Assembly: GCA_964035545.1 (NCBI GenBank)
Contig: CAXIUT010000196.1
Span: 1 to 30,720, forward strand
Direction: 5' to 3'
DNA length: 30,720 nucleotides
Source of the DNA: Bugula neritina
Taxonomy: Eukaryota > Animalia > Bryozoa
A program made the translations under genes and the position numbers. Within the stretch, counting starts at the first letter, position 1; every line of letters begins with the position of its first letter. A model generated the notes under the pieces. That model was not told where the DNA came from and ran no database searches. It saw nothing but the letters and a program-made list of their open reading frames with translations. Of this stretch, positions 100 through 30,428 are shown piece by piece.

Positions 100-180
100 T
101 CCAGTCATAAAAAAATAACTTATAGGCATCTATTTTTATGTTTTTAATAAGATATAATTAATCTAATATTTATAGAATTA

Positions 181-6000: not shown

Positions 6001-7193
6001 TAGATCTTAAAATTTCCATTCATTTTATTAACTTTTATCTGTATTTGCCAATAAGAATAATCTTTTATGTAATTCAAAATATGCTGGGAATAGTTATTGA
6101 ACCTCAAAGAAAGCATCTTTTTTTGAAACAGAAACATGTGCTATTGAAGCAGAAGGATAATTCTCTTACACTTACTTCAATGCCTTTTTGATTTATGATG
6201 CATTTGGATATGAATCATCTACTTTTACTATGAAAACAGCCAATTACTAATCATCTTGAACATGTTCTAAAGAACGAATTTTAACAGAAACAGCTATTTT
6301 TTTAAGAATGATAAAATTTTATTTAAACTATTATCCAACCTCGATATCTTGCTTCCAACCTCCAGAATTGTGAATACACTAAGCTAATTCAAGCATAGCC
6401 TAGAGAAGACCTGGCTCATTACTGTTATTAAGAATATTACATCTGAGTAATTTTAACTCAAAGAGTTTTTTATCAACTAATTGTGATTAAAGAAGTTAGA
6501 ATCCTATTTTTTATAGTAATTGAGTAGTATTCCAGAGTTGTTATTAATTTGGTTGTTATCCTTTGAGACGAAAAGCTAGAACTCGATAGTTTAGGTTCAG
6601 ATAATCTTCTTTTAGTTCAAATTATTTTAAGTATTTCCAAATATATGGTCGATGAAATGAAGTTGTTTTGGATGAGGCATGAGCTGACATTGGACAGCCA
6701 CAATTATTGCAACTCATGAAAGGAACTCTTTTCGTTTTATTTTTATTGTTCTGATTGTTTGTATTTTTGAAATTTCCTCGAAATATTGAACATCTACTGC
6801 ACCCCAAACATAGAGTTCTTCTGTTTTTAAAGATTGAAGGGGCAAGAACAGTATTTCCTCTTTAAATTTATCGATTTAAATCGCTAACTCTTTTTTCGTA
6901 GTCCTCAATTATGACGATTATACTTCCATTGTGGTATTTTTCAATACCTAGAATTAAACTCTTTGGGAATATTTTTACTAATCCCTCCTCGCCTGGATTA
7001 AATCTGGGTCCTCAATTGCCAGATTTTGCTACTAGTACTTTTATTGATTGAAAAGTCTATTGGGATCATAAGACAATTCAGTGCGGATCAATTCAGATTA
7101 TCGCTTTTTGAGAGGTCGACCAAGAGGATTGAAAGGACTGTTGCGGATAGCGCATAACTATTCTCCTATTTTAGAAAAAAACTCAGTTGTCAT
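3010..7193 (-). CDS. ~1387-aa protein with a Cys/His zinc-finger-like motif and two degenerate nucleoside-diphosphate-kinase (NDK)-like domains
   Basis: Continuous frame from ATG 7193 to TGA 3010-3012 after removing a 20-nt intron at 6904-6923. Motifs: CLGCSRC...CNNCGCPMSAH; IIIIRPLAAKISEIIVNILRLNGFIIIQRRKQRISLEQAH...MMSAGASELLLVSKMGAI; VIVIVKPAY...SKIGAY. Confidence 0.8.
6904..6923 (-). other. 20-nt intron (gtataatcgtcataattgag)
   Basis: Joins the ATG-7193 frame to the Zn-finger/NDK frame. GT...GAG with A at -6. Confidence 0.7.
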
Positions 7194-7261
7194 TTAAAAT
7201 TAATGATAACTATTCTTAATCAAACTTAAATATTCATAATTATAGCAAATTATAGTATTTA

Positions 7262-7366
7262 GGGGTTGGGGTTGGGGTTGGGGTTGGGGTTGGGGTTGGG
7301 GTTGGGGTTGGGGTTGGGGTTGGGGTTGGGGTTGGGGTTGGGGTTGGGGTTGGGGTTGGGGTTGGG
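7262..7366 (+). repeat. Right telomere, (GGGGTT)n, closing minichromosome 1
   Basis: Perfect T2G4 array, inverted relative to 1-99, 68 nt upstream of an inward-pointing ATG. Confidence 0.97.
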
Positions 7367-8478
7367 ACTTCATAGTTGACACTGGTCAAGAACCATTTCT
7401 AAAGACTGATGAGATTTTATCCTGAAATGTTCATTAAGTCACTAAAATATTCAATCAGACCTTAAATTTATTCATCGTAAAATACTTTTTCTGCGACAAC
7501 TGTAGCTACTCCAAGCAACCATCCTGCATTTTTGAGCTGAAGATCAATTTATCCTCGGGCAAGGCATTTGCAAAGAAGACAAAGGGCCAAATTGATAAGA
7601 AATGGTGACTATGACGAATAGAAGCACTAAAGTAATTTTTACGAAAGTTCAAGATCAGGAATAGATAGATCTTATAGCGATATAATATTCTAAATTGAGA
7701 AAAATGAACTACACTAGCTTCTATCTTCAATAATGGTGATAGAAATATTGGGATTGTGAATGCTAAGTTGATTGTTAAGTTTGATTTAGCCAATAGAACA
7801 TTTATCATTTTGACTTTGAGAATAAGAAGATACACTGAATTGACTACCTATTTTTTATAAAACCTTTCCTTTTATATTTATTTTATCTGTATTTTATTTT
7901 TGGATTCCTTTTAAGTTGATAGCATCTGCGATTGATATTCTATTCATTTTGCTCATGTTTGATTGACCTTTTTTCAATTGTAATCTAGGTAAACTTTCAC
8001 ATTCATCATCTTCTTAGTTAGGATTAAATTTAGAGACAAATTGGGTTTTATTTCTACCTTTTTTTCTCTTAGGAATGATAATTTCTTAAGAACTTCCTTT
8101 GTTGTTTTTACTTTTGTTTGAAGAAAATGATCCTAAGGAACATTTAGACTTGCTAATTGAAAGACTCATTTCTTAATCAAGTATTTTGAATGTTTTTATT
8201 AGGGAGTCAAATCGAGGTCTTTACTTTATAGCAAGATTGAAGAAAGTAATTATTTTAGTATAGAGTTTATCTTTGGGGATGGCTTATATTTATTTTTATC
8301 TTTGAGAAGAGCGTTATTTAGCATAGAGAGATACTTTACTTTCAAAATTCAAGCCGTATATGCTTGAAACATGTTTGTTATTATTCTTAATAAGTTATTC
8401 TTCTTCAATGTTTCTTAACTAAGGAGAGTGAACAATAATAGATGGGACTTGACTGTATGACTAGATAGATTCTTCCAT
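7367..8478 (-). CDS. Cyclin-domain protein (Pho80/PCL/cyclin-U-like), 3'-truncated at the junction
   Basis: Open frame from ATG 8478. The C-terminal part [52 protein letters not shown] resembles the cyclin box. It runs into the telomere tract without a stop. Confidence 0.7.
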
Positions 8479-8795
8479 TAATTAATTAAACATAGAATTG
8501 ACGATATAACTTTACACCTAAATAGCGATGAATGGATAATTAAAATTAATAAATAATAGAACTTTAAACATAATCAAAGTACTGTTCAGATAGTGTTTTA
8601 TATAGAATTATTTTTTATTATTCCTAATTTTTTAAACTTTTTATTTGGCAAAAATAATAAAAATTAACCACTTCTTATACTTTTATACAAACAAAGAATC
8701 TGATAAAAGGGATAGGAGTTGTTTGACTTTAACTTTATATTCTTTGATTAAAGAATAAATAGATAGTCTTTTGATAAAGAATAAATTATTTCTAA

Positions 8796-9635
8796 ATGCT
8801 ATCATCTTGTATTTCTTTGTCTATAGTTTAGTTGTATAGTTCTACTTAAATATATTAAACCTCAATTTCTTGTTAATTATTAATGTTGCAAGAAATGACA
8901 AGCCCTGGAGACAATGCCAAAGAAGAATAACGGAAACGAAAGTCTTCTAACAAAACTCTTATTTTTAAGTAGTAAATTAACAATTTTATCGATTCGATTA
9001 TTGATAGTGTCAGGTGGAATCTCTGTAATTAATTTGATAGTTAGCTGCAAAGAAGTATTCTTCAGACTTTCTAGAAGCTGTTTTTATGAAAATCAAAAAC
9101 CCAAAACAACTTAACTTTCTTTGGTTACGTATTGTTATTCTTAAGAAGATTGGAACAGTCTCTAGAAGGTTTGTGACTTAGTTGTCAGACCAGTTTACAC
9201 TTGTTTGAAAATTATAAATATTGGAGGAAACAATATCACATCAGTAGAATCACTTGCAAAGGCCAATATGGAATCCCTCGAATAGTTATGGCTGTGGAGT
9301 AATAAAATAACGAGGGTTGATTGTCTCAGAAAGATGAACATACCCAATTTGAAGTACCTTGATGTTAGTTCGAACTTGATAGCTGAATGGCCAAGATTCG
9401 GATAGCTAAATTGCCATCATTTGGAACTCATAAGCATTCAAAGAAACAGTTTTGTTTTTGTCGATCACTTCATAAAGAACATAAGATTTGAAGATAACTG
9501 CGTGTTAAATATCTGTAGAAATAGAATTATTAAGTCGATAACAAACTGATTCGAGTTTTTGGAAAGATTGTCTCTAAAAAGAAAAAACAAGGAAAACTCT
9601 TTCACGTTATGAAAAACAAACTCGAATACATCTGA
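8796..9635 (+). CDS. Leucine-rich-repeat protein, ~259 aa, three 20-nt introns (start codon uncertain)
   Basis: LRR units LNFLWLHWNSL, LKIINIGGNNITSVESL, LEELWLWSNKITRVDCL, LKYLDVSSNLI. Introns 9025-9044, 9129-9148 and 9515-9534. TGA at 9633-9635. Confidence 0.85.
9025..9044 (+). other. 20-nt intron (gtaattaatttgatagttag)
   Basis: Restores the LRR gene frame. A at -6. Confidence 0.75.
9129..9148 (+). other. 20-nt intron (gtattgttattcttaagaag)
   Basis: Removal yields the LRR LWLHWNSL and the downstream frame. A at -6. An AG 3 nt earlier would keep the same frame, so the acceptor rests on the LRR register. Confidence 0.75.
9515..9534 (+). other. 20-nt intron (gtagaaatagaattattaag)
   Basis: Yields VLNIFDNKLI, at the same LRR phase-1 position as the other two introns. 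A at -6. Confidence 0.7.
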
Positions 9636-9916
9636 TCATCAAACGTAAATCCATTTAATATCAAATAAACTCAATACTATCTATCTCTTCAATAGAAACT
9701 GTTCAAATCAATATCCAAAAGTATATCTAAAAATACAGTCTTAAAATATTTATTTCAGAAGGACAACGTCACTTGAATTACCTCTGTTAGCCCTGTTTTT
9801 AAGTTTTTCTTTTAATTTAATTTAAAAGATAAATAGTTTTCAATAATTTTATTAGCAAGTCAGTTTTTTATATAATTTAATATTGAGTTTGTGTAATAAA
9901 TATAGTTATTAATCCG

Positions 9917-11647
9917 ATGGGCATTAGCAACTCCCAGACATTTCCTTTCATGCCCAGTCCTCCTCCATATCACTAAGAACAGCAAATAATGACTAAAGTT
10001 TGGACTTTTAAAGATATTTTATAAATGAAAAAGAAAGAACAAATACTATAGTCAATTAAACATGAACAAAAATACAACATCTGCAAAATACTAAATAACT
10101 ATTCCGAATATATCAACTAAATACAAAGTTGGAAACTAATAGCTGCATTTTAGTATCCCTTACATTCTCTTAGAAAGGAAATTATCTAACGCAAAAAATT
10201 AAAGCCTCCTAAATACTTCACTTAAAAATAACTATAAACCATTCTTAATATATCAGCATTGTTTTTTAACAACTATTATGCCTATCTTTGCAATCATAGC
10301 GATATTTTCTCTAATATTTTTATCCATAAAAATTAATTTAAAATATGTCATCCTGAATTACTATCATGTAACTGTTCAGATAACTACTGCACCACTAACA
10401 ATATTAAACAGCAAGTTATTGATCAGGTGTTAGAACTTATCATGTTGACTAAGATAGTGAGAGGAGGGAATAGATAAAAATAAAAAGCTATGTATCTGTA
10501 TAATCATTCCAAATGGCTATGCAACCTACTCTAGAGACTTGTAGATCCATCGAGTAATCTTTTGACTTTGTGTCAAGAGTCATCTTTTCTCAATCAAGTA
10601 TCAAAGATTTAATCAAATAGAAATTATGAACTATCGACTGAAATAACTCCTTTCACTCTTTATCCTCCAAGATTCACTACTCCCTATCGATTTGATAAAT
10701 AGATATAAGTGCGGTAGTCTAAACATGCTTAATAGACAAAAGTATCAAATAATACTCGATTTTATCAACGTTCAAATTCTTTAGATTTCTAACAATAAAA
10801 ACAACCTAAATATTCTGTTTTACTTTATGAAGGAATGTAGCTGTAAAAAAAATTAACCCTCGATTAAATATAAAAATAGATAGTAGAATCTTACGGATAA
10901 AATTAATAAACTTACTCAATTGTAAATCATACCAATCTATATGAGCTACCTAGTGAAGGAACAGACACAGTAAAAGAACATCACTTCTAAATCCAAGATA
11001 CTAATAGTGTGATAATAATGTCATCACTTTACAAAGACTAGGAAACAATCAAAAATAGTAAAAGTTGTGTTTATCCAGTCATACCTACAATAATAGAATA
11101 ATAAAGTTAAATATATTCTCAAGATTCTAGAAAAAAGTAGTAGATATCATCTCCTAAACATCTGAATGTAAGTATATAATAGAATGGTTATCATTATAAG
11201 GGGGAGATGTTGAAGGGAAAGAAACATGGAAGAGGGGTATTTTACTATCCAAATGGAGTTCATTATGAAGGAGAGTGGTTTAATGATTAAATGTAAGGAA
11301 TAGGGACTTTGTATTATTCATCAGGTCAAGTATATTATCAGGGATATTGGAAAAATAATAACTTTCATGGAAAAGGAATATTTTATAATTAAAATTAATA
11401 AAGAATTCAAGGTTGCTTTGATTATAGAGATTTTAATCAAATTGGGAAAAGATGGAGATCTTTTTAAGGAAATTTCTAAAAAGATAATAAAGAAGGTTAA
11501 GGAGTTTTAACGCTATCGAATGGCTAAGTTCTTCAGGCATAGTGGAGATAGAATGTGATATCAGGGAGGGGAATTTTCTATACGCTTCAAGGTCACATAA
11601 TCAAGGGAATATGGATAGAAAATATACTCTATTAGCAAGATAATTGA
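9917..11647 (+). CDS. MORN-repeat protein with a degenerate kinase-like N-terminal segment, ~576 aa
   Basis: Single frame with TAR=Glu. C-terminal MORN units [70 protein letters not shown]. The N-terminal [17 protein letters not shown]...YFTEKELETIL resembles a kinase hinge/alphaD-alphaE. Confidence 0.85.
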
Positions 11648-11755
11648 AATGAATGATTTTTAGGTACTATTAATATCAATTCATTATTAATATTAAAAAT
11701 ATGATTAGGAAATTATAATTATTAGAAACATAGAAAAGAAATATGTATTTTTGAA

Positions 11756-13597
11756 TCATTTTTTCATCTTTTTTTCATCTTAAAGATCATTAATACGATT
11801 TTTTTGTTCATCAATTGTTGATTGATGAAGAGCTACTATTCCTTTCAAAGTTGTTATTTCTAATTATAGTTCTTCTCTAAAATCATTTAATTTCACTTCA
11901 GAATCATTCTTCTTTTGTCCTTCATAAATGTTTATAAGTTTAGTTCTTTATAGAAGCCATTTTTATTTTTAAAGAACTAATTCATTTCTAGCCTCAATAA
12001 TGATTTGATCTTTTTGAAGTTAGAAATCTTATCGAAGATCAGCTTTAAGAGTTTATTTTAGTTTGTTCTTTTATGTTCTTAGTTGCATTAATTCATTTTC
12101 TTTACTATTTTTCATTTTTTCTTTTATAAGAACTTATTTTAATATTTTTTAAGATTATTCAAAAGACTTTTGTAATTTTTCTGTTTATTTTCTTATCATT
12201 TAAAGATACTCTTTAGAACTGGCTTCATGAAGGGAAATTTGTTATCCTCTTAATAATCTGCCAGCTAAACTTTGTCTTAATTCTGTCAGTTATGAATTAA
12301 GTTGTAAATTTTTGATTTATAAATTTTAGTTTAATTTCTAAAGTTTTTTTAATTGATCTTGAAGTCCTTTTTTATCTTTTTTAATTCTATCTATATTTTA
12401 TTGATTTTATTCAATCGTTCTTATTTTTCCTTTAAGTTAAATAATATCTTTATCTTTTTTTGTTATTTACTTCCAATATTTTAATTATCTAATTAAAGTA
12501 TAATATTTTTTTATTCTAATCCTTTTAATTTTCTTAGTTCTTTCAATAAAGAGTTATATTATGGATTATCATTAATTTTTAAATGTTCAGGTATTGTTTT
12601 TTGATTGATTTTAAGTATATTGACTTATTATTATAACTACTTTATTCTTTTATTTAATAATTCAAGAATATTATTTTCTTAATTATCTATTTAAGAAATG
12701 ACTTTTTGTCCTGAAAGTACCTTTAGATTAAGTTATGGTTCATATTTATTTGTGTTAAGCCATTAATGATTTTTAATTTGTTCAAGAGTAAATCTTTATT
12801 CCGGATTTCTTTTTATCATTCCTAGTATAAAACTTTTAGCTAAAATAGAAAAATTACTAGGAAAGTTTATTTTGGCATTCAATATATTTTGATTCATAAT
12901 ATTTTAAACTTTATCAACAAAAGGAGTTTTTCCAGTTAATAATTAAAAAGTTAGAACACCAATACACCAGATATCAAGTTTTTAATTGTGACCTGATTTA
13001 TCTATCATTTAAGGAGCCAAATATTGATGAGTTCCACAGAAAGTTTTTCGAGGTTTATTGAGAAAGTTAGACCATCCGAAATCTAAATTAAAACAAAATA
13101 ACCTGCTAATTTGACTCTATTCTTTATGTCTAATAGAATATTTTATGGCTTTATATCACGATGAACTATTTGTTTCTTATGGAGATATTAAACTGCCTCT
13201 AAAACTTATCTTATCATTTGTTTAGCAGTATTTTAATCTAATTTACCCTATTTATTTATTTTAGAAAAAAGCTGACCTTTATGAGCAAGCTATAAACAGA
13301 GATAGATATCTTCTTCAGTTTAAAAATAATCCTTCAATTCTATTATATGAGGGTGATGTAGCTATAAGGATATTTTTATTTCATTTCCAATTTGATTTTC
13401 CATCTTTGATTCTCTCATTTTTTTTTTAGATATCCTTTTCAAAGCAAAATACATCTTACTCTTTTTATATATTGCCTTATAAACAGTTCCAAAAGCTCCC
13501 TTTCCCTGATTTAATCAAAAAATACCAATTCTTTAGTAATTTAAAAGTCTGAGAGTTCACTTTTTTTTCGTTTAGGGTTTTAATTTTAAGTAATCAT
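11756..13597 (-). CDS. Aurora-like Ser/Thr protein kinase with a long C-terminal coiled coil (~595 aa)
   Basis: [77 protein letters not shown]. 20-nt introns at 13506-13525 and 13083-13102. One further unresolved frame shift near 12450-12470. Start codon inferred. Confidence 0.9.
13083..13102 (-). other. 20-nt intron (gttattttgttttaatttag)
   Basis: Splits the Asp codon of DFG. Removal gives KLADFGWS. Confidence 0.95.
13506..13525 (-). other. 20-nt intron (gtattttttgattaaatcag)
   Basis: Removal gives the Gly-rich loop KELGKGAFG. Confidence 0.93.
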
Positions 13598-14043
13598 ATT
13601 TGATTTAATATAGTTTTAAAGAAAATTACGAGGTTTAGAGTATAATTTTCTTATTTCTAAAAGATGATTCTTAATTTTTGATAAGTTTAATTGGAATTTT
13701 TATTATTAATTTTAGTGTTTATTGATAAGACTTTTAAGTGAAAAAATAGATTAAACTTAAATCGTTCAACTGTTATTTTGAAAAAGAGAAAAAAATGTTT
13801 TCATTGAAGTCTTTGAATACAAAATTTTCATTTTTAGTTCAAGACATTTTCTATTAAAAAGAAGGTAATTAATGAGAGATTATACTTTTTCAATATTCTA
13901 AATTTGATACCTATTTTTTTCAATTATTTCATCTAAATTTAAAAGCTTTTATTCTCAGAACAATTCTTTAAATCTATTCATTTTATGATGATTTTTAGTC
14001 TGTAAATAGGAGTTATTTATAGTAGATAAATAGGAATTATCAA

Positions 14044-14453
14044 TCATTCCTCAGCTGCTCTTTCGATACGATACAATAAATCGATAAATTACAACTCCTT
14101 CTTTCTTGTGCCTGGACCTGTTAAAGCTGCAAATATTTGATCTTATTCTTAATTTTACATAGACATCTCATTGATATTTTTTATTTTTTTACCTTTCTTG
14201 AGACTGCTCTTCCTGACTTTTTCTTCTTTTGACTTCCCCCTTGTTTTTGGTCCGATAGCGATTATTTTTCCAAACTTTTGTTTGCAGACAGGACAAGTAT
14301 TGTGATTCTATATTAAGAGATATTTACCTGAGACCACTAGGTGATGCACTGATGGCAGAAAAGATGGGAACATTTATCTGGTTTATGAGGATTTTTGACT
14401 TTAACGAGGCAGATTGGACATATATCATTGGAGTAACGATTTGACTTGTTCAT
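14044..14453 (-). CDS. C3HC4 RING-finger protein, ~129 aa
   Basis: CPIC...CSHLFCHQCITEWSQNHNTCPVCKQKF after removing intron 14308-14327. TGA at 14044-14046. Confidence 0.9.
14308..14327 (-). other. 20-nt intron (gtaaatatctcttaatatag)
   Basis: Joins the two halves of the RING motif. A at -6. Confidence 0.92.
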
Positions 14454-14548
14454 TTAGGAATGTTTATTATTAGAGAATTTACTCAAAACTATTAATTATA
14501 TCGTTCAGTTTTTAAAATATTGTCTAATTTTTATAAATATGATATTTC

Positions 14549-14622
14549 GGGGTTGGGGTTGGGGTTGGGGTTGGGGTTGGGGTTGGGGTTGGGGTTGGGG
14601 TTGGGGTTGGGGTTGGGGTTGG
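14549..14622 (+). repeat. (GGGGTT)n telomere tract ending segment 2
   Basis: Perfect T2G4 array, 95 nt upstream of the RING gene ATG. Confidence 0.96.
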
Positions 14623-14631
14623 ATTTATCAT

Positions 14632-16107
14632 TCATTTGCTATAAAAGTGTCTAAAGACAGGTTCCGAAATGAATTTCTAGGTGTTGAAGTGTTAATTTCC
14701 TATACTAACAGATATTATTTTAGGATCAAAGCAACTGAATTGATAATTTATGCGATATATTTGGGGCAAATATTATGCAGATAACTCCTTATATGATAAT
14801 AAATTTTAAATAACATATTTTTTATTTATAATTTCAGTCTCTTTTTGCTTATTGTATCTTGTTACTTCTTGAATTTCCTCTAAAATATCATTTAAAACTA
14901 TTTATTTTTATTATTTTATTCCTTATTTCTGATATCTCTTTGGTGTTAATTAATTAATATTTAAATCTTTTATTTGACTAGCAATAAATGAACATAAATT
15001 AGATTTTCTAAGTTCCTGTTATGACTATTATGGCTATTCGATAACTATTTCTTCTTGTTCGCTTTCACTCTATTCAGAAGTGAAGAGATTTACTCTTGGA
15101 ATTGATACTGATTCTTCAATAACAACTTCTTATTTTTTAGATTGACTTTCTTCCTGAATTTTATCTTATTTTAGGAGTAATTTTTATTCTATTAGTTTGC
15201 TTATTTATTTATTAATTGGGAACTAAAAGTGTTTTAAGTCTTATTTTTGATTTACAGGCTATTTTTTAAAAGAATTGTCAAACTAATTTATGTTTTTTAT
15301 CAATGGAGGTTCTATTTAAAGAAATAATGATGATTATTCTTTTTATAATTATGACTATTCTTTTTATAATTATGATTATTCCCTTTATACTAATGACTAT
15401 TCTCTTTATAATAATGATTATTCTCTTTATTGTAACAATTCTTATCCCAATTATGAATATACTTTTTATTAATAAGGATTTTAATTATTTCTATTTTAAT
15501 ATTCACTCTTATTATCAGCTCTTTTTCTTCTTTTTCTGTTTATTTTATTCAATATACTTTGATTAGTTTAAATCTTTTGAGATAGTATAGAGTCTTCTTT
15601 ATTTCTTTTTATATAATTTCTTTTTTTTATGTAATTTCTTCTAATATTTTTTTTCTTATTTTTCTTTTTTGATCTAATAAATTTAATGTTTTAAGATTTT
15701 TATTTTTTTTTGTTTTTTTTAATAGAAGGGCAATAAGAAGAGTCAGATAGAAGGAGATCATCATTTTACACTTATTGATTTTAAGTTCTAAGATGATGAT
15801 ATTTTTCAATATTTAAGAAATTATATGGTTTTTTAACTCTACCTTCCAAATAAAACTGAGTCCACAGTTTTTCTTATCTTTCTACAAGATCTTTCTTCTA
15901 AATTTAAAACTGATAAACAAAATGCATTAGATGTTATAATTTTTTGATTTATTCCCATTTGAATTTCTTCACCTAATCACTTATCCACTCTAACTTATAC
16001 ATACGCTAGCCATTGACTATTTGAAAGTTGGTTATTTTGAAATCAACTACCTTCCCCTTTATAATTTCATCTAAGTTGCGAATATCTGCCTCACTTTACC
16101 ACTACAT
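14632..16107 (-). CDS. ~491-aa acidic protein with a possible N-terminal chromodomain-like segment and internal heptad repeats
   Basis: One frame, ATG 16107 to TGA 14632-14634. NGERMYKLEWISDEVKKFKWEEIKKLEHLMHFVYQFE resembles the chromodomain pattern. The domain call is tentative. Confidence 0.65.
15330..15434. repeat. Coding 21-bp tandem repeat, 5 copies (EESxLE[K/R] on the - strand)
   Basis: Units atga(t/c)tattc(t/c)(t/c)tttat... start at 15330, 15351, 15372, 15393 and 15414. Confidence 0.9.
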
Positions 16108-16209
16108 TTTATATTAATTCTAATATTGGAGGTAATTAGCTATCTGGATTTATATATCGAATACGTTAATTCAAAAATATATCAATTGGGTCTGAAGTAT
16201 CATAAAAAA

Positions 16210-16566: not shown

Positions 16567-16682
16567 CGAGTCTTCTTTTAATTTCTTTGTATTAATTATA
16601 AAATGATCACTCATCTAAGCTCTCAATAGAATAAATATAAATTATACTTATTTGAATTATCAGAATATAAGGTTAGATAGAA

Positions 16683-17259: not shown

Positions 17260-19691
17260 ATGAAATTTATCATCATCTTCACTCTCCTACTCCTAGAGAT
17301 AAGTTCAACGACTCTAGCGACTGATAACTGTCCTTAAGGTTTCGAGATCACTACTTCTAACTCTACAACCTATACCTACCTAAAATCAACCACTGATCTT
17401 CTCTATGCCGATATCTATTCTTCACAGGATCAATCATAGTTGCAAGCTGCTTTTCATTCTGGAGATACACAAACAATCAATAAACAAATAGTAACTGTTT
17501 CGTTGATTGTTCCCTTTATACTTATTATGGTTGCCTTTGTAATTACGTTTGTAATTGCTATTTGCTGTTGTATATTTGAGAAGTCTTGTCCTCCCTGCAA
17601 GTCGTGGAAAAGAGATTTTACTATTAGACCTTATGAAAAGTCATAACTAAAATGTCTAGTAGTGTTTACTCTTATATTTGCCATTGGAATAGCCCTCACA
17701 ACTATTGTTGCTTTTGTCTTCTTCCCAAAACTTAATTAATATATATAAAACACAAAATGTGGGCTCTACACAACTTTAGATGTAGCTAAAAATGGAGACC
17801 AAACGAATGGTTGGGGAGGTTTTACTCAACTAAAAAATCAAATAGGAAATGTATCTAGTCTTCTCTCAACTGCTTCCACAGCTGTATCGACCAATCTAGC
17901 TAATAATGAATGGCTAAAAACCTATATGTAAGACTTGAAAGAGCAAAATATCGACCTTTATAAAAAGAATTTCGAATCTACAGTCCTAACTCCAACTGCT
18001 GCCACTACAGCAAGTGCACAAACAAGAGACGATATCCCAAGAGTGACTCCTCTTTTCATTTCAGCAGGATTGGGACCAAATGGTACTGCGAACACTATGG
18101 TTACTGATCTTGATGAAGGAATTAGAGTTACTGAACAGGTATCAGCTCAAGGTTATAAAGTATTTACTTCTGCTTTCCTCTTTGCTAATTCATAAACTAC
18201 AATGAGTCAAAATCTTAATTTAGCTATTGATAGCATGACTCAAAATTCTAATTATCTCACTGATATTCAAGTATCTCTTGACAGCTTTTCTGCTTCTATA
18301 TTTGATAATTTATTCAACTGGGGACTTTACATTATCCAAGCTATTTTGGGCTTCATATTAGCAGCTAGTCTGTTACTTATCCTTGGAGTTGTAGCTACTC
18401 ATTGTTTTGAACTTTATCAATGTAGATTAAGTGTACATCTTGGCTGGATCACCTATGGAATTACATATTTTGGTATTGTTGGATTAACCTTTATATTTTT
18501 TAGTTTTGGAGGCACTAGTTATCAATTTTGTTAATTTTATGGTTCATTGATGACAAGTAGTACTTCTTTTTCTTCATATGCATAAGTGACAGGTCCTAAT
18601 GAGTTCAACCGTTTTTTCCAGAAGATTTAAACTTGTTTCTATGGTGATGCAGACATCATGAAATCATTTGCTATTGCACAAGAGACTCAAACTATTAGCA
18701 ATATGTATGCTTAGATATAAACATTTTTGAATATGAGAGATTCAACGACTACTCATTATGTAGATCCTTCCAACTCCACCACCAAGATATCAGGATGGAT
18801 TGCTGCTATGGAAAAATACAGACTTGGAATCTATGACGATGCAGATTCTACTCTTACCTCATAGGATAATCCTAAAGTAGCACTCGCTAACTTCAATAAA
18901 TATACTAACAACTAAACAGGAGGAAATCCGCCCAGTTGTACCAATGACTATTGGGTTTTCGATAGTACGAATTGCACTAATAGTGCTACTGAAACTCTAT
19001 ATGTTTCTAACTCAGGAAATAGTGGGACTACCTTTGCTGCCACTGGCAATACCTGTATTTCTTTTAATTAGAAGTTTCAATCAACAAATAGTTATATTTG
19101 GAGAGAAAGTGATATATACAATCGATACATAAGTCAAAGACAGTGTGGAGGGATCACAGATACTTTCTAGAATGTTAAAAAGTATGCTACTTCACTGATA
19201 AACTATCGAGATTCGAGAATCAATTTATACCAAAACTTAAAAGATCAACTTGATGCTCTTCTTACCTCCAACAATAACTTCAATACGAATCTTACTACTT
19301 TTACAACTGCTGTTTCAGGATTTGTTACCAGCACTTCCACTCTTAATACCTTAGTAACTAATGCTGTTAATGGCCTTGATGCATCTGGTAACTGTACTAC
19401 TATTGCTAATAATATGAGATTTGTTTATAATACATTTTGTGTTAATTTTCTTTATACTTCAGTTCAATTTGGTAATTTTTTTGTTATTTAGGTATTTGTT
19501 GTCTTGTATTGCTTGCTATTATGATAGGAGGCACTCTTACTGGTAGCGTTTTTGCCATTAGATATGGAAGACTTGAACATGATCATAAAGCAGTCAGGCC
19601 AGAAACACCTTCCTTACAACAACTTCATTCTGAAATATTTGAAAAGAAACAAGAATCTAAATCATCGAGTTCGTCTTCTGATTAAGATTGA
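17260..19691 (+). CDS. Five-TM glycoprotein with prominin/Tweety-like topology, ~803 aa
   Basis: Track ORFs 17440, 17935 and 18202 are in frame with ATG 17260. Signal peptide, TM1, Cys-rich loop (ICCCIFEKSCPPC), TM2, large loop, TM3-TM4, large loop, TM5. Intron 19472-19491. TGA 19689-19691. Confidence 0.8.
19472..19491 (+). other. 20-nt intron (gtaatttttttgttatttag)
   Basis: Removal gives SVQFGICCLVLLAIMIGG (last TM). A at -6. Confidence 0.88.
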
Positions 19692-20948: not shown

Positions 20949-21000
20949 TCTATTATGTTTAATTTTATTATTAATTATTAAGATAACTATTTGTTTTTTA

Positions 21001-21864: not shown

Positions 21865-21875
21865 TTTATATTATT

Positions 21876-22328: not shown

Positions 22329-22442
22329 CTAAATAACTCAGTATTGAACTTTGATTCAGTCAATTAAATTTATATAACTTACATTTTAATTAACTTGATA
22401 AAGATTGATAAATATTGATATGATATAAATAATATCTTCTTC

Positions 22443-23252
22443 ATGGATAGACCTTATAATCATGCAGATTAAATTCTGAGATCTTCTCAAGGTTATGCAC
22501 TTTTTATTGGAGATATTCAATCGGCATAAAATTTTGATTGGCTCAAGAGTAATCATATACTCACAGGTATTTTCTTAAAGATTTAGTCATAACTGCTGCT
22601 TCAGGATTTCATTTAAAATATCCTTCTTCTATCAGTCATATTGTCTATCAAATGCAAGATACAAAAATGGAAAATATATCTCGTCATTTTGATACAGCTG
22701 CAAAAAATATAGATAAAAGTGAATATTCTTTAATTTAGGTCTTAAAGTTGGTGGAGTATTAGTGCATTGTGGAGCTGGAGTATCAAGAGTAACTCTTATT
22801 TTAACTAGTCTCCGACCTTGGTGATCGCATACTTAATTAAATACAAAGCGATGACTTTTCATTAAGCTTTAAAACATCTTAAAAGCAAAAGACCTACAAT
22901 CTGTCCTAACCTAGGATTTTAGTTACAGCTAAAATCATATGAAAAAAAACATAATTCTCTAGCTAATACTTTCTCGCTTTCTTCATAAAAGAAATAAAAA
23001 AAGTAGAAGTTGCCAGAAATCATGAAATAAACTTCTTTTCAGACAAATGCTTTTAACAGTTTTGCAAATTATCATCAGACAAGAGGTATTAGTCTGGTTA
23101 AGAGTAAAAGTTTAAAACCTTTAGAAAGCAAAAAGAAGAAAGAAGATTAGTATCTAAGAAATATAGCTGAGTTTAGGTTTGGAATAACTAACATGTCTAA
23201 ATGGAAAATATAAAGAAATTTCAAAAATTAAAAGAAATTCGTTCAATTCTGA
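22443..23252 (+). CDS. Dual-specificity protein phosphatase, ~249 aa, three 20-nt introns
   Basis: LFIGDIQSA, QDTKMENISRHFD, VLVHCGAGVSRSPTLVIAYL, KRPTICPNLGFELQL. Introns 22567-22586, 22719-22738 and 22789-22808. Confidence 0.93.
22567..22586 (+). other. 20-nt intron (gtattttcttaaagatttag)
   Basis: Gives NHILTVITAA. The internal AG at positions 13-14 is presumably skipped. A at -6. Confidence 0.88.
22719..22738 (+). other. 20-nt intron (gtgaatattctttaatttag)
   Basis: Restores the frame into the HC motif. A at -6. Confidence 0.9.
22789..22808 (+). other. 20-nt intron (gtaactcttattttaactag)
   Basis: Splits the catalytic HCxxGxSR|S motif. A at -6. Confidence 0.95.
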
Positions 23253-23636
23253 TTTAATATTTTTGTCAAAATTATATTTTTGTTGCTTTTGTCATCTATA
23301 TCATTCTTTTTTTAATTCATAATTTATTTTTTTGACTTTATTTGTTATTTAATAGTATTTTTTTCTTTTAATTATTTCTGATTTCTGATTTCTAAAGGAT
23401 AATATTGAATCTAGATTCTTTAATCAATTTTTATTTAGAAAGATATGACTTAATTATAAATATATCTGATTAAATTTAATCTTTATGTAAAGGTTGTTTC
23501 AAAAGACTATTTTTTCTTGATCTGTTTCTATTTTAAGAAACTCTTATTTATCTTATTTTGTTACAGCTTAATGAATAAAATAAATGATCAAAATATAAAT
23601 AACTGTTCATTAATTAGTTCAGTGCACATAATCATC

Positions 23637-24491
23637 ATGCTTCGTTCTTCAATTGACAATCTAAACTTCCTCAAAAAAACTCAAGGATAAACTTTCTATC
23701 GAAGTAAGCGTAAGACAAGTATTGGGATTGGTTAATCTTCCACATCAAGAAGATATAGTGATGGGCAACAATCACCTAAAAATCAAGATAAAAGTATAAA
23801 ATCAAATGCTGATCTTGCTCTTAAAGATATTAGATAAAAACTTAGCTCTTTGTTTTCAGTAGATACTCAGAACAATCTATTTAGCAAAAAAAATATTGAT
23901 CAAAAAAATAAAAAATATGATCATTTCAGAATAACTACCTTTCGATATCCTCAAAAAAAGTTTTCCTATCATAAATCTCCTTAATCTCTTGAAGAAACCA
24001 AACTTTAAGATATCCAAAATGAATTTAAAGTGACTGAAGCGAACATTCTGAAACGATAATCTGCAAATGATCCTCGAAACTATGATCAACTTGGCATTAA
24101 AAGACATTTTCTTAAGTGGCAGGGATAAAACCGTTGTTTTGAAAAGGCAGTTCAATTCAAAAAACCCAGTTCAAGACATACAACAGATAAATTAATAATG
24201 TTAATCAAGTAAAGGTAGGGAATAGAAAGTCATAAATAAAGATTAGATGTCAAATAAAGATTAGATGTCAAATAAAGATTGAATAGTAATAAATCTAGAT
24301 TAGATAGTAATAAGTCAAGAAGTAGTCATGGATAAAAAACAGAAAGTCATAAGTAGAGGTTAGATAGTCGTAGGTAGATTAGTTTATAGTATTCTTCTGA
24401 TGAATTGGAGATAAATGAAGTGGAGGGATGGAAAAGGACGCCCAAAGAATTAGAATAAAGTTATCTTATGAACTTTTAAAATGAAATTTGA
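23637..24491 (+). CDS. Hypothetical low-complexity protein, ~284 aa (start uncertain)
   Basis: Open frame to TGA 24489-24491. Ser/Lys/Arg-rich with KERLD repeats. Confidence 0.55.
24234..24280 (+). repeat. Coding 18-bp tandem repeat (aaataaagattagatgtc x2.6), with degenerate copies to ~24370
   Basis: Direct inspection. Encodes KERLDV repeats. Confidence 0.85.
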
Positions 24492-24619
24492 TAGATATCT
24501 TTTTCCATTATTTTTGACTTATTTTCTTAATTTCAGCAAGTACAAGCTGGATATGCTACGTAAAAGCTTTTCACTGCTCTGATAACTTTTCCTCCTCTAG
24601 AATAGTATACAAACCAGAT

Positions 24620-24916
24620 ATGATACATACCAGCGCATAGTTGATTGACTACAGCATTCGTAATATTAATTCCATTGATATCCTTAATCCAGGCTACTTG
24701 AGACAAGTCGATACTAACAAGTACTTATGTGTTGAAGGGTTTATGAAATTCAATGAAGGTTCCACATTTGATAATCAATTACCATTGGCTATTGCACTAC
24801 AGGAGGTAGAAAGTATCAGTGCATAGCCAGATATTATTGTTCGAATTATAGTTGATGAGAGTAGTAGATCCTTTTTAGCAGAGAGGTATTCGATTAGAAT
24901 AAATGTTGAAAGCTGA
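24620..24916 (+). CDS. Possible small hypothetical protein (~98 aa; 5' end unresolved)
   Basis: Extends track ORF 24641-24826 through TAG codons to TGA 24914-24916. Confidence 0.4.
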
Positions 24917-25171
24917 GTCTATGTTTGTTTGATAGTCAGAAATATAAGACATATTTTTGTATATTTCTTTGAGGGTTAGTTATTGTGAATATGTAATTGG
25001 TCCTGCTTGTGAATAATTCAAGTGCTATGGTGATAAATTTGAAGCTACTGAGTTATTGCATCTACAATTAGCTGTTTCTATTAATATTAGAATGATTCCA
25101 ATCATAATAGTTATTGATTCACTCCTTTTTTTCATGAATAATGTTATTAATTTTGATAAATATATTGATTA

Positions 25172-25849
25172 ATGCAAGAACTTCTTCTTGAAGATTTCCA
25201 GAGCTTTGCTAACTCAATTCGTCAAATAACTTTTAATGATGTGCGTCTCAAATTCATGGACTATCAAAATAATGACTCTATCTCGAAGATGGTAGGTGAG
25301 TATGTACCAAAATTGCATCAATATTAACAATAGTTTGATCAGCATAAAAAAGAGGAAGAAAATATGAGAAAAATACCATCTTTTGATGGAAAAAAAGAGT
25401 TTAATAATACGGATAATATGCATAGAAAAATAATAAGTACTTTTAAAAACTTTTTATTAAGCTAAATAAAAGATTTTAAAGAATATCTTCGTCTGACTAT
25501 TGATATCGATCAACTCAGTAACATGCTCAGTCGAATCTAGATCTTGAGATTCAAACATTCAGAGTGGAACCTGATTTACTATCTCTTTACTGCTAGTAGA
25601 AGAAGCATCAGAATATTTCTCAAGCTAAGAGAATAAATAATTAAAACAAACACCTTTACCACTGTCAAGTATAATCCCATTTCTACTCACAATTCGGCCA
25701 AATATACAGATAGATACTACTATCTTGATAAAATGAGTGTTTCTAGAAAGAAAAAAGAGTGGTAATAATTGGTTTTTCTGGCTGGATTCGTCTATGATGA
25801 TGAATTTACACAGCTTCTTTTTAGCGAAAGAGATGAGTAAATATGGTGA
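25172..25849 (+). CDS. Hypothetical protein, 225 aa
   Basis: ATG-to-TGA open frame with TAR=Glu. No motif recognised. Confidence 0.6.
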
Positions 25850-25975
25850 TATTTAGAATATTAGCTGCTTAAATTATTGAATACTGCTTATGGCTTAATA
25901 AACAAACTGCTGGATCATCTCCTACCAAGTGATATTAACATCTTTATCTTATAATTTGACTTATAATAATTGCCA

Positions 25976-27067
25976 ATGATAAGAAGCAACAAGAAAAAAG
26001 AGAAATCAAAAGAATCTCACAAGGAATCAGAACAAATCAAAAAGAAGCAGGAATAAAATAAGCTTGTAGACAAAAAGAAAGAAGATGATCAAAAAGAAAG
26101 AGCTCCTAGAATATTAAAGGAAATTGTAATTCCTATTCCTTTGGTTGTAACTAAACCAAGAAGAACTCGAAAGAGAACAGTTGAAATGCCTAAAGGTTAT
26201 TTAAGATATGCTTCATTACCTTTTCCTCCAAGAAATTTTATCGAATTGACTGAAGAAGAGATTGACTTTATTTCTTTATGGAGAGAAAAATATAATTTTC
26301 GTGGTTTCAATCTACTTAGCGAGGATCAATTAGAAAAGACTTTTAAATTTTTTACTAGTTTTAAAAACCAAAAAAGTTATTAATAGCTTGAATTAGAGTT
26401 AAGAAAGTACCTGCTAAGTCCATAAAATTCAGAGTTCTATGCTATTTTCAAACTTTTCAGTCAATAAGATGAATAATTATTCTTTTAATTTACTTCAAAA
26501 TTAGTTTTAAAATGGAAACATAGAATTTAGTATAGGTTTAGTCTAAATGAACATCATAGAAAAAAATGTTAAAATATTCTTTTTCAGGCTAAATAAAATT
26601 TTATTTTTACAAGATTTAGTTGGTAGAGTGATAAGTATGTTGTTTTTCTGAATAAATAGATAAAAATCAATCAGAAACTATACAATGAAAATCAATCGAG
26701 AAGCAAAAGATTTAACTAAAAAAAATAATTACTCATAAAAAATGTAATAACCTTTATGAATAGTTTAGAAAAATTTAGAAAATCAGCTAATCTTGATGAA
26801 GAATTTGAGAATCTGTCCTATTTTATGAAAAATAAATAACATAAAGTAAATCTTATTGAAATTGATTTAATTATCAAAAACGTCATCAAAAAATTTACCT
26901 AATATAAAATCAGAAAATCAAATAATAAAGAAAGTAGTAATAGACTATCAGGAAAAATCATCTCAAACTTGCCGATTGAAAGTTCTCAAAATCAATAACA
27001 TATTCGTTCAAGTCAGTAAAAGTAAGGTTAAGGAATAAAGGCAAAATCAAAAAAAAGGAAGTCTTGA
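25976..27067 (+). CDS. Hypothetical basic protein, 363 aa
   Basis: Contains track ORF 26141-26383 in frame. TGA 27065-27067. Confidence 0.65.
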
Positions 27068-27093
27068 TAATTCATTTGATAAAAAATCATTAC

Positions 27094-27504
27094 TCAACAA
27101 CAGCAAAATCCTCCTTTACTTTATTCTTAAAGACGAGATTATCTTATATTTGACTTATTTTTTTTAGGACTACCTTTACTTCCTATTTCAATTTCATGTC
27201 TTGACTTTTTTAGATCTAACCTTTCCATTGAATGTTCTTCTCCTTCATAGAGATAGAGTTTTATGACTCCGTTTTAAGGTCGTATGTGTTTTAATATTTG
27301 TGAGATTGTGGAATCTTCTGAAATAGGTCTTCCTCTTTTTTCAAGAGCTAGATAGTTATGGTTGTGAGATAGTTTGTTTAGTTCATGGAGATATTCGAAT
27401 AGATTTTTGATCCTTGTTTTTGATTCTACTTCTAGAACTATCTCTTTAACTCTGGTTGCATTGGAATCAAGTTTTCCCATCATCATGATTCCTACTTTGT
27501 ACAT
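27094..27504 (-). CDS. 136-aa protein with a possible ubiquitin-like fold and a C-terminal GGFCCC lipidation motif
   Basis: Track ORF 27274-27504 extends through TAA codons to ...SKGGFCCC-TGA. The pattern EVESKTRIKNL...LEKRGRPISEDSTISQI...VIKLY resembles a beta-grasp fold. Confidence 0.7.
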
Positions 27505-27562
27505 TCTTATCCTATAATTTTATTAATTTTATCCAACTTTAATTAAATCACTTAGAATACCT

Positions 27563-27650
27563 GGGGTTGGGGTTGGGGTTGGGGTTGGGGTTGGGGTTGG
27601 GGTTGGGGTTGGGGTTGGGGTTGGGGGTTGGGGTTGGGGTTGGGGTTGGG
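27563..27650 (+). repeat. (GGGGTT)n telomere tract ending segment 3, with one G5 variant unit
   Basis: T2G4 array with GGGGG at 27623-27627, 58 nt upstream of an ATG. Confidence 0.96.
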
Positions 27651-28005
27651 AAATATAAAAGTATTATTCTGAAAACATTTAACTTTTGAAATCTATTCCC
27701 ATGTTCTAGTGTTAGAATAGCAATATTTAATCATAATTAACATTTTTAATAATCCCTTTTTAAAGCTTCTAAAACAAAGAAGATTTCAAGGTGATCATGG
27801 AATTAAATAAATAAAATTCTAAATTTTGAAAATAAGAATAGAACTTTCTCTGTTTGTTTCATTCATAACTCTTTTTGATTATATTTTTATTGATAATTTG
27901 TATTTCTTCTAATTGATGTTATTTCGGATAAACGCATAATGGAAGATTGTTCGTTTAAATTTACATAGAAATTCTTTCCCTATATTCTATTTAAAATCAC
28001 AGAAA

Positions 28006-29917
28006 ATGGCAGGAGACTCAGAAGAAACAAAGAAACTCAATGGTTATACAGATATAGAACATGGACCCTTAAGTGAAGCTAACAGATAGTGTAGAGATAT
28101 CATCTGCACCATCCTCTTTCTCGCCATGATCGTTATCATGGTCTACATGTCAGCTCATGGCTATGCTAATGGAAATCTCAGCAAACCCTTCAGAGCCACA
28201 GATTCTAACGGTATAGTTTGTGGAGAACCTGGAGGAGTGGCTGAAACTTATCCTTATGCTTACTTTTTCAACCCAACCTCTTTTACTCTTGAGAATAGGT
28301 TCTGTGTACAAGAGTGTCCCAACTACTCATCAGGATCTCTATCAACTCTTAGCTGTTACGGAACATCATGCCCATACGCAGTTACAATTCTTTCAGATGG
28401 AACATACTCTTCCAATCCTTCTTCTACATCAGTTATCATTGGCTATGAAACATCATCTTTGATCAGTCGTGTCTGCATTCCTAGCAGCACAGTCTTCACT
28501 GGTGCTTTTGCTTCTTATGTTTCTACCTTCAGCACCTACCTTTCACAAGGAGGCTTTAGTACTTTCATCACTGACCTATAAAATGTATATTATTTAATAT
28601 TTAGAATTGGCAATGGGTTTTGGGTGCAGTAGGCTTCTGTGTTATCCTTTCCTTTGTCTTCATGTACTCTCTTAAGTGCCTTGCAGGATGCATTGTCTGG
28701 ACTTCTGTCTTTGGCATCATTATTGCTTTTGGGCTAGCAGGTTTCATCTGTCTCTATAATGCTGGAGTTATCGTTACCCCTGATGCTGCCTCTGGATACC
28801 TTGGAATTCCAACTGTTTCTGGAGCCACTGAGAATGAATATAAAATATTCGGATATATTGCATTTGGATTTTGTGGATTTTTCCTTTTGCTTCTTCTTTG
28901 CTGTTGTAGTCGTATCCGTCTCGCAGTGGCAGTTTGTAAAGCAGCAGGTCAATTCGTTTCGCATGTCTGCACAGTTATGTTAGTGCCTATCATTCAGGCA
29001 TTCATAACCTTATCACTGTGGGCAGTTTGTCTTATAGCTATGCTTTACCTTGCATCAGCTGCTACTTATGTCTATACTGGAGATGTTTTCACAAGCATTC
29101 AAAGCTATAAGGAAGATAACTTGATGTACTTTTACACCTTCCTCTTTGGAACTCTTTGGTGTAACGCCTTCATTCAAGCTGCAGGAATCTTTGTGATTGC
29201 CAGTGCTTGCTGTATCTGGTATTACTCACATGGACCTAACCAAGATGAAGTCAACTTCCCTATCTTTAGAAGCTACAAAATGGTCTTTAGATATCATTTT
29301 GGTAGTCTTGCTTTTGGATCTCTTATCTTGGCTATTGTCCAGTTCATGCAAATCATGCTTGAGTTGTTTAAAAAGCAAGCAGAAGCCAGTGGAGCTGATA
29401 ACAATAAGTGTTTTGAGTACGTTATCAACTGTTTGAGATGCTGCCTTGAGTGTGTTGAGAGAATTGTTCAGTTCATCAACAAAACCGCTTACATTCAGAT
29501 AGCTTTGAGAGGCAAAAACTTTTGTAGCGCTGCTAAAGACGGTTTCGAGATTGTCTGGGCCAACCCAGCTAGATACTTTATAGTCGGAGGAGTTGGTTCT
29601 ATCATTATGTTCCTCGGAAAGCTGATGATCGCATCTGGAACTACTATCTGTTTCTACTTGCTCATTACTTATGAAAGCAGCATTAAGCAGAACGTCATGG
29701 AGCCAATCTACCTTCTCATCGTACTTCTAAATATATTTAGATCGTTTTCATCATTTCCTATGCAATTGGAGTGCTCTTCATGGCTGTCTACAGCATCGCT
29801 ATGGACACAATCCTGCAATGCTTCATCGTTGATGAGGCCAACCAACAAGCCAAAGGAGCTAAGACTGCTCTCTATGCTCCAGAATAAATCCAAAACCTGA
29901 TCGACATGGACGAATGA
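28006..29917 (+). CDS. Choline transporter-like (CTL/SLC44) protein, ~623 aa, two 20-nt introns
   Basis: NRECRDIICTILF, DSNGIVCG, FCVQECP, RIRLAVA, RYHFGSLAFGSLILAIVQ, FINKTAYIQIALRGKNFCSAAK, IAMDTILQCFIVD. Introns 28585-28604 and 29721-29740. TGA 29915-29917. Confidence 0.95.
28585..28604 (+). other. 20-nt intron (gtatattatttaatatttag)
   Basis: Joins the two large track ORFs (TDLEN|NWQWVLG). A at -6. Confidence 0.93.
29721..29740 (+). other. 20-nt intron (gtacttctaaatatatttag)
   Basis: Restores the SLC44 C-terminus (IVFIISYAIG...DTILQCF). A at -6. Confidence 0.93.
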
Positions 29918-29967
29918 TACTTCACACTTTACTCTTTAATATTTATCATCATATTTAGTTTATAAAA

Positions 29968-30428
29968 TCACTTCTTGCCTTTCTTGTAAACTTGGTTAGC
30001 ACTCATGATCTGCCCTTTTCTGTCTAGTTGGTCTGGCTTTAGCTAAACTGCAACTACTTTTAGAACCTAGCCATCTTCAATCAACTCAAACTTACCATTG
30101 ATCTCACTGCAGCTAAAAATGCTTTTCTTGGCTACATTGTCCTGAATAAGATTAATAGTACCATAGAGTTTTGACTTCCTCCTTTGATCGTAGCTGTTAT
30201 GTGATTTCCTTATTTCTGAATGTCTCCATTGAAAGTAGTTTAGTTTTTGTTAGCAGTGACCAGTTCATAGCCTCTTTAGCATTAATAGTAGTAAGAGTAT
30301 GTACATTCGAAAGTATTGTTTGGACGTAAAATAAGAGTTCTGTTTTAATTTTCATAAATTCCATAGTCAGCATCAGCCTACCTTTGATCTTCAGTGAATT
30401 ATTTATGACAAGTGTATGAGGTTTACAT
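29968..30428 (-). CDS. Hypothetical beta-rich protein, 146 aa, one 20-nt intron
   Basis: ATG 30428 to TGA 29968-29970 in frame after removing 30142-30161. Confidence 0.65.
30142..30161 (-). other. 20-nt intron (gtactattaatcttattcag)
   Basis: GT...CAG with A at -6. Restores the frame to the terminal TGA. Confidence 0.75.

Follow-up and report, generated by a model that had tools for sequence, protein, structure and literature searches.

In the assembly of the bryozoan Bugula neritina, contig CAXIUT010000196.1 carries a stretch of 30,720 nucleotides (nt), positions 1 to 30,720, which was analysed as a whole and is called the window in the following. Its genes are interrupted by very short introns, of which at least 15 could be located, and 15 of 15 are exactly 20 nt long and bounded by GT and AG. 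Very probably, they represent ordinary U2-type GT-AG introns from a peritrich ciliate, piled up at a minimum length of 20 nt and with a fixed spacing between the branch point and the 3' splice site. A first-pass annotation of the same DNA had described 14 of them as products of a fixed-length, ruler-type splicing system with an invariant adenosine six nucleotides from the 3' end (position -6, which is position 15 of 20). Its description of the single introns held up, while the term 'fixed length' turned out to be too strong: among 45 homology-placed introns of relatives that read UAA and UAG as glutamate, 12 are 21-23 nt long, and none is shorter than 20 nt.

Introns of the window

The introns located in the window are the following. 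A15 stands for an adenosine at position 15, slashes mark splice joints, and scores refer to a weight matrix that is described further below.

6904 to 6923, minus strand: 20-nt GT..AG intron, phase 0, A15; joins 154 and 1297 TGA-free codons
9025 to 9044, plus strand: 20-nt intron, phase 1, in a leucine-rich-repeat-like gene; placed by frame continuity only (83 and 53 codons)
9129 to 9148, plus strand: 20-nt intron, phase 1; placed by frame continuity only; matrix score below the threshold of 8
9515 to 9534, plus strand: 20-nt intron, phase 1; placed by frame continuity only (205 and 32 codons); matrix score below 8
13083 to 13102, minus strand: 20-nt intron, phase 1; lies within the DFG motif of a kinase gene (VKLA/D/FGWS)
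13506 to 13525, minus strand: 20-nt intron, phase 0, just 5' of the kinase GxGxxG loop (ITKEL/GKGAFGTVY)
14308 to 14327, minus strand: 20-nt intron, phase 0, in a RING finger
19472 to 19491, plus strand: 20-nt intron, phase 1, in a 790-codon gene and close to its 3' end; joins 773 and 65 codons; highest matrix score in the window (13.5)
22567 to 22586, plus strand: 20-nt intron, phase 1, in a dual-specificity phosphatase gene; weak DSPc match on the next exon
22719 to 22738, plus strand: 20-nt intron with a GTG start, phase 1, in the same phosphatase gene (NIDK/S/LKVGGVLVHCGAGVSR)
22789 to 22808, plus strand: 20-nt intron, phase 0, in the phosphatase gene; splits the HCxxGxSRS motif (VHCGAGVSR/SPTLVIAYL)
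25837 to 25856, plus strand: 20-nt intron, phase 2, A15; found as a matrix match
28585 to 28604, plus strand: 20-nt intron, phase 0, in a choline-transporter-like gene (FITDLEN/NWQWVLG); joins 304 and 431 codons
29721 to 29740, plus strand: 20-nt intron, phase 0, in the same choline-transporter-like gene
30142 to 30161, minus strand: 20-nt intron, phase 0; joins 115 and 57 codons; matrix score 12.2

All 14 segments of the first-pass annotation were checked in the sequence and are 20 nt long, on the strand given for them, with GT..AG ends and A at position 15; the intron at 25837 was absent from that list. A GTA start is present in 13 of the 15. If any of the 14 is retained, a TGA follows after 11-228 codons, and precise removal restores the frame and the collinearity with homologous proteins, as is the case for spliceosomal introns. 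Removal joins long TGA-free frames, for example at 6904, 19472 and 28585, and at 8 of the 14 it recreates conserved motifs (KLA/D/FG, L/GKGAFG, the C3HC4 RING, VHCGAGVSR/S), so that the boundaries that had been described as pinned by motifs are indeed so. In the case of the kinase introns, the piece downstream of 13083 begins at position 142 of the Pkinase profile and the piece downstream of 13506 corresponds to positions 8-51 (E 7e-8). Splicing at 14308 completes the RING C3HC4 (CPIC..CSHLFCHQCITeWSQ/NHNTCPVC), and the exon after 22719 matches DSPc profile positions 74-90.

The additional intron at 25837-25856 contains the TGA that had seemed to be the end of the gene. Splicing yields a C-terminal exon (IEYCLWLNK..) which is conserved in two syntenic relatives, and at the orthologous site the aligner described below places a 20-nt A15 intron in L039 of species B (11586-11605) and in L036 (2273-2292).

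The surrounding block (23900-29900) keeps its gene order in three species (the window, L039/L033 and L036): the gene carrying the intron at 25837, a short gene on the minus strand and the choline transporter. Its G+C varies from 0.30 to 0.47 across species, and in species B the distance between two of the genes is longer by about 1.3 kb.

Three further matrix matches were rejected: a segment at 7690-7709 (minus strand), which lies inside an uninterrupted leucine-rich-repeat frame; an 18-nt segment at 12840-12857, since kinase subdomain XI fits better with the segment kept; and a 22-nt segment at 15536-15557 inside a strong 512-codon frame.

Source of the DNA

The window has 30% G+C, and a comparison of open reading frames (ORFs) gave long frames only with TGA as the sole stop. 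Its kinase genes contain in-frame TAA at glutamate sites (HRDIKP-TAA-N and AP-TAA-M, within the motifs HRDxKPEN and APE). The assembly of 216 Mb contains eight large standard-code chromosomes, C1-C8, of an animal-like host with multi-exon tubulin and dynein genes and, besides these, hundreds of small pieces on which kinase genes show in-frame TAA/TAG. On two small pieces, alpha-tubulin has TAA/TAG at conserved glutamate sites (FFS-E-TGAGK, VID-E-VRTG and VG-E-GMEEGE). The window and the small pieces thus read UAA and UAG (together UAR) as glutamate and UGA as stop, like a peritrich nuclear genome (code 30). As the reassignment of UAR to glutamate has a single origin, in Peritrichia (PMC10553269), these codons point to peritrich DNA co-assembled with that of the animal. 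By its genetic code and its C4A2 telomeres (see below), the window organism is a peritrich ciliate (Oligohymenophorea, glutamate code) and a cobiont of the animal host; more than one peritrich may have contributed to the ciliate pieces of the assembly.

Telomeric (C4A2)n/(G4T2)n tracts are found in the window at 6-95, 7260-7367, 14547-14618, 27561-27651 and 30626-30715, and the part from 1 to 7367 is telomere-capped at both ends. These tracts indicate that the window consists of small telomere-capped somatic chromosomes placed end to end, which are the four segments of the first-pass annotation. Another ciliate piece of the same assembly, C66, likewise has such tracts, at about nine internal places. 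We used 200 kb of C66, and about 245 kb of ciliate DNA from the assembly were analysed in all. Only four ciliate dynein AAA1 matches were found in the assembly, and the ciliate genome in it is therefore very incomplete.

At 8900-14899, many single-base differences and two 1-nt insertions distinguish two DNA sequencing runs from the window, which indicates strain or allele variation in the ciliate population.

Intron length across species

The choline-transporter-like gene could be followed across species. PF04515 positions 2-289 correspond to residues 85-368 of the 372-residue exon before 29721 and the next exon continues from 294; if 29721 is left unspliced, the PF04515 match is lost at profile position 296. 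The homologues P0030, P0014 and P0007 cross both junctions (28585 and 29721) without insertion or deletion. P0001, P0002, P0004, P0024, P0026 and P0036 diverge exactly at the junction, which is what gene calls extended into an intron would show. A protein-to-genome aligner with an equal intron penalty for every length of 8-150 nt was then guided by intron-free P0030 or P0014, and it placed both introns exactly, with 20 nt each. By their frames, their motifs, the PF04515 match and the alignment to intron-free homologues, the segments behave as the GT-AG introns that they had been taken for.

At the same two protein positions, the relatives L033 and L036 have introns of 20 and 20 nt, L037 has one of 20 nt (the ortholog of 29721) and L038 has 23 and 23 nt. 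Orthologous introns are thus 20 nt long in up to four species (56-76% protein identity) and their sequences are unrelated, i.e. intron length is conserved across species and intron sequence is not.

Because ab initio frame tests were too noisy, two frame-independent tests of length were used, a weight matrix and introns placed by homology. The weight matrix scores positions 1-8 and the last 10 of each segment together with the interior composition. It was trained on the 14 window introns and six from other species, and was applied to the independent 200 kb of C66 at each length (L) of 18-60 nt. With a score of at least 9, there were 23 matches at L=20, while lengths of 26-60 nt averaged 3.6 (Poisson P ~8e-12); with a score of at least 10, there were 15 versus 1.1. 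The C66 profile has no second peak between L=18 and L=60, L=21 having 7 matches (P 0.07). No excess was seen at 18 or 19 nt on C66, where the profile starts from 18 nt, nor at 16-19 nt in the window, where there was also no 21-nt match. The peak at 20 nt is present in species B, C and D as well and absent in L038.

For the second test, the aligner was applied to all 80 choline-transporter loci that one metagenome scan yielded. Loci at least 41% identical to the guide (40-odd loci) make up the glutamate-code group, in which UAR codons align mainly to glutamate (E 92, D 24, Q 17), while those of distant loci pair with glutamine. The 45 distinct, well-flanked introns of this group comprise 33 of 20 nt, two of 21 nt, nine of 22 nt and one of 23 nt, with none below 20 nt and none at 24-30 nt. 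Together with the window and the C66 peak, this makes 20 nt by far the commonest length, as had been claimed. Different lengths occur within single loci (21 and 20 nt in L055; 20, 21 and 20 nt in L061; 22 and 20 nt in both L089 and L090), and two lineages lie off 20 nt, L062 with 22, 22 and 22 nt and L038 with 23, 23, 21 and 21 nt (0 of 4 at 20). Since the flanking reading frames fix the length modulo 3, the 21- and 22-nt classes are not misplaced 20-nt introns.

The aligner is not tied to 20 nt, as can be seen from its placements in more distant relatives. Introns of 15 nt are located at the same protein position (522) in L099 and L102 (G+C 0.51-0.52), and L106 and L107 have introns of 27-28 nt (G+C 0.22-0.24, with UAR mostly glutamine). 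From these features, the former look heterotrich-like and the latter Paramecium-like.

These tests bear on the idea that the uniform length is an artefact of ascertainment, in which the true lengths are broad (about 18-30 nt) and frame-shifting introns of 3n+2 nt with a familiar pattern are simply the easiest to spot. The first-pass annotation itself had cautioned that its method finds frame-shifting introns more easily, and codon usage does discriminate poorly between frames (~0.085 nats per codon), which leaves ab initio tests noisy. However, the matrix scores the ends and the interior composition equally over L=18-60 and peaks only at 20, and the aligner, in spite of its flat penalty, still puts 33 of 45 introns of the glutamate-code clade at 20 nt, leaving 17-19 and 24-30 nt empty there, although it returned 15-nt and 27-28-nt introns elsewhere. 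An artefact of this kind is therefore very improbable.

Several other length signals were discarded. Counts of GT..AG, GTA..TAG and GTA..A-6..AG by length were too noisy in the window alone and merely suggestive in the window and C66 together (181 versus ~135). ORF joining with TGA as the only stop was flat, since this rule leaves random frames open too. Gene finders based on codon usage and the Viterbi algorithm, with introns or generic frameshifts, were weak at the frame discrimination just given, and most of the 'shift by 1' events that they called were artefacts, while one proved to be a 20-nt intron of a SNARE gene. Excesses at 14, 22 and 35 nt were traced to a 21-nt coding tandem repeat at C66 ~58744-58890, plus strand (GTAAAGACAGAAAGGAATGGA..), which mimics chains of 14-, 22- and 35-nt GT..AG 'introns'. 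Paralogue-guided spliced alignment within the assembly gave only three supported introns, all of 20 nt, and a 60-nt 'intron' from it reads as a coding insertion.

The adenosine at position -6

All 14 introns of the first-pass annotation have A at -6 (~4e-7 at 35% A), and so do 33 of 33 homology-placed 20-nt introns of relatives, whose selection was blind to internal bases. In the same 33 introns, A is found at -7 in 8, at -8 in 3 and at -5 in 1, so that the reported preference for A at -6 is clearly above background. On C66, candidates were also collected by the matrix without its -6 position: within coding context 12 of 13 have A there, and outside coding context the base is A in 6, G in 5 and T in 4, near background. 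A at -6 is thus effectively invariant in 20-nt introns, and we take it to be the presumed branch adenosine, at position 15. In its distance from the 3' end it agrees with heterotrich-type introns, where a conserved A likewise lies 6 nt from this end; in length the introns differ from the heterotrich type (15-16 nt).

In longer introns the picture is more varied. The two 21-nt introns placed by homology carry A at -6; among the nine 22-nt introns, A is at -6 in five and at -8, which is position 15, in seven. In the case of L062, A is at -7 or -8.

A strict, two-sided ruler would mean that only 20 nt is accepted, with both the distance from the 5' splice site to the branch and that from the branch to the 3' splice site fixed, and that all exceptions are annotation errors. 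A ruler of this type fits the 15 of 15 window introns, the one length peak (20 nt) shared by C66 and three relatives, the orthologous introns whose sequences have turned over completely without a change in their 20 nt and the A at -6 in 33 of 33, but it is at odds with lengths of 21, 22 and 23 nt that are frame-fixed at orthologous sites in relatives and, in L055, L061, L089 and L090, stand together with 20-nt introns in one locus. Nor does it account for three intron-like in-frame segments of 21 nt in C66 genes (see below) or for a distribution that is one-sided, with nothing below 20. We consider such a ruler unlikely. Of the ruler-type geometry first proposed, the spacing between the A and the 3' end stands, as it equals that of Stentor; the two-sidedness does not, as the lengths are one-sided at a minimum.

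Another suggestion, of low probability, is that intron length is quantised in peritrichs with a lineage-specific quantum, which would be 20 nt in most lineages, 22 nt in L062 and 21-23 nt in L038. If this were true, it would imply a heritable and evolvable spacing rule in the splicing machinery, which could be traced by comparing spliceosomal RNAs and proteins between sister lineages that differ in their quanta.

Presence in DNA and putative mode of removal

Six window introns are covered by contigs from two DNA runs which stay colinear across them, with no joint at these sites and no shortened DNA form. The segments are therefore present in DNA, and under the explanation we favour, that of introns at a minimum length, they would be removed at the RNA level. 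A non-spliceosomal origin would instead make them germline-limited DNA left in the assembly, like internal eliminated sequences (IESs), or sites of translational bypass or frameshifting. Short IESs do exist in ciliates, frameshifting is frequent in some of them (Euplotes), and the segments are known here from DNA alone. IESs, however, are bounded by TA and absent from telomere-capped somatic DNA, while the segments are bounded by GT..AG, with GTA and a fixed internal A instead of TA..TA, and lie on capped, telomere-bearing contigs, i.e. on somatic chromosomes, of which no segment-free form was seen in the two DNA runs. Frameshifting cannot restore motifs such as DFG either, for which an exact skip of 20 nt is needed. 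A non-spliceosomal origin is, in our view, scarcely credible. A search of the assembly for genes of U2 small nuclear RNA (snRNA) scored host copies only, the ciliate part being too incomplete for absences to count.

In-frame candidates and points against the explanation

Three GT..AG segments of 21 nt were found in C66 genes (plus-strand coordinates):

C66 169952 to 169972 (L017): 21-nt GT..AG candidate, T-rich, phase 0, A at -6
C66 194707 to 194727 (L020): 21-nt GT..AG candidate, T-rich, phase 0, A at -6
C66 166686 to 166706 (L017): 21-nt GT..AG candidate, T-rich, phase 0, A at -6; between a SNARE motif and a membrane anchor

Each of them, if retained, adds seven residues in a good coding frame. 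Going by this pattern, they are probably introns with a length divisible by three (3n), a class that is invisible to frame-based reading. The initial caution about missed 3n introns was therefore apt, as it concerns exactly this class.

Several points weigh against introns piled up at 20 nt, or against how far this can be extended to the window organism. Firstly, the 20-nt share of 73% (95% interval 58-85%) among the 45 homology-placed introns is a figure for the clade, pooled over many species, and not the share in the window genome. For the latter, the proportion of other lengths is poorly bounded, as the matrix test would allow about 10-25% at 21-22 nt, and 3n introns are beyond proof without RNA or homology. 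Secondly, only two sequencing runs hold the window sequence, both of them DNA, and two runs labelled with the host species contain no window sequence. Thirdly, a 20-nt candidate in good coding context at C66 34297-34316 (plus strand; GTATATTTTACCTTTTTTAG) is without A at -6 and is a possible exception to the rule. Lastly, in the tail of a kinase gene of the window (12289-12568, minus strand) the frame changes without a 20-nt GT..AG candidate: the kinase frame stops at a TGA and an overlapping K/E-rich coiled-coil frame is shifted by 2, the only candidates there being A-rich segments of 17, 23 and 41 nt. The site could be a boundary between genes or an intron of atypical form.

A proposed minimum spliceable length

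Taking these points together with the evidence above, we still favour ordinary U2-type introns at a length minimum. On this view, the introns of the clade have shrunk to their observed minimum of 20 nt, which would be the shortest length that the spliceosome still accepts. Their layout consists of GTA at the 5' end, a T-rich interior, the presumed branch A15, three mostly pyrimidine bases and AG. Most introns lie at this floor and a minority 1-3 nt above it. The floor would be steric and set by two spacings, of which that from branch to 3' end has the heterotrich value and that from 5' end to branch is 5 nt above the one in heterotrichs. The lengths break off sharply below 20 nt and extend only a little above it, which we read as a minimum spliceable length and not as a two-sided ruler.

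As 20 is 3n+2, a retained intron always shifts the frame, and with a single stop codon a frame shift would be the surest route from retention to a premature stop. In-frame introns are rarely caught by a single stop, which would explain that 21 nt is rarer than 22 nt. The low share of 3n introns in most ciliates would fit such a selection against in-frame introns.

Comparison with known systems

Peritrich 20-nt introns belong to the known class of tiny ciliate introns. Narrow peritrich intron lengths are already published, and the present work refines and extends them and describes no new phenomenon. According to the text of Zhou et al. 2026, Mol Biol Evol (PMC13685798), intron lengths in the peritrichs Campanella sinica, Epistylis hentscheli and Vorticella campanula are narrow like those of Paramecium. 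The same text states that 3n introns are few in Paramecium and the three peritrichs, with a low 3n share in most ciliates, and that the core spliceosomal proteins, all five snRNAs and the GUAGUA of U2 are conserved in all ciliates surveyed, including the three peritrichs. The window organism resembles these peritrichs in its narrow lengths and, by genetic code, belongs to the same clade. Relative to the text of that paper, with its figures outside the comparison, the length, the motif, the A at -6 and the conservation at orthologous sites between species are added here for peritrichs. A literature search found no statement of 20-nt peritrich introns in the papers that it covered, the figures and supplements of PMC13685798 lying outside its scope.

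Tiny, length-locked introns are natural experiments on the minimal spacing of 5' splice site, branch point and 3' splice site. Heterotrichs provide one data point (15 nt, A at -6) and peritrichs a second one, with the same distance from branch to 3' end and a 5' arm longer by 5 nt; the sister lineages at 22-23 nt are further data points. This pattern points to the 5' arm (U1/U6-U2 geometry) as the part that differs between clades. On the practical side, gene prediction in peritrichs, including cobiont contigs in animal assemblies, fails unless 20-nt introns and the glutamate code are allowed, and GTA-N11-A-N3-AG is a usable prior for annotation.

In heterotrichs (Stentor coeruleus, Blepharisma), introns are 15 nt (~93%) or 16 nt long. 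The peritrich introns are like them in being GT-AG and AU-rich, with a nearly single length, a small class at one nucleotide more and none below the mode. The branch A of Stentor is at position 10 of 15 and 11 of 16 (PMC9505925), and the presumed branch A is here exactly as far, 6 nt, from the 3' end. Unlike in heterotrichs, the mode is 20 and not 15, with the extra 5 nt between the 5' splice site and the A; the length is 3n+2, whereas heterotrich introns are mostly 3n; and the lineage is a distant one (Oligohymenophorea, glutamate code).

In the karyorelict Loxodes magnus, introns have a mode of 17 and a mean of 19.3 nt with negligible counts below 16 (PMC11441545). Peritrich introns share with those of Loxodes magnus and Paramecium the lower bound, the one-sided tail and the depletion of 3n lengths, and the 27-28 nt of L106 represent the Paramecium-like kind within our own sample. 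Both Loxodes and Paramecium are clearly broader, in contrast to peritrichs, where about three quarters of the clade's homology-placed introns, and 15 of 15 in the window, have one and the same length.

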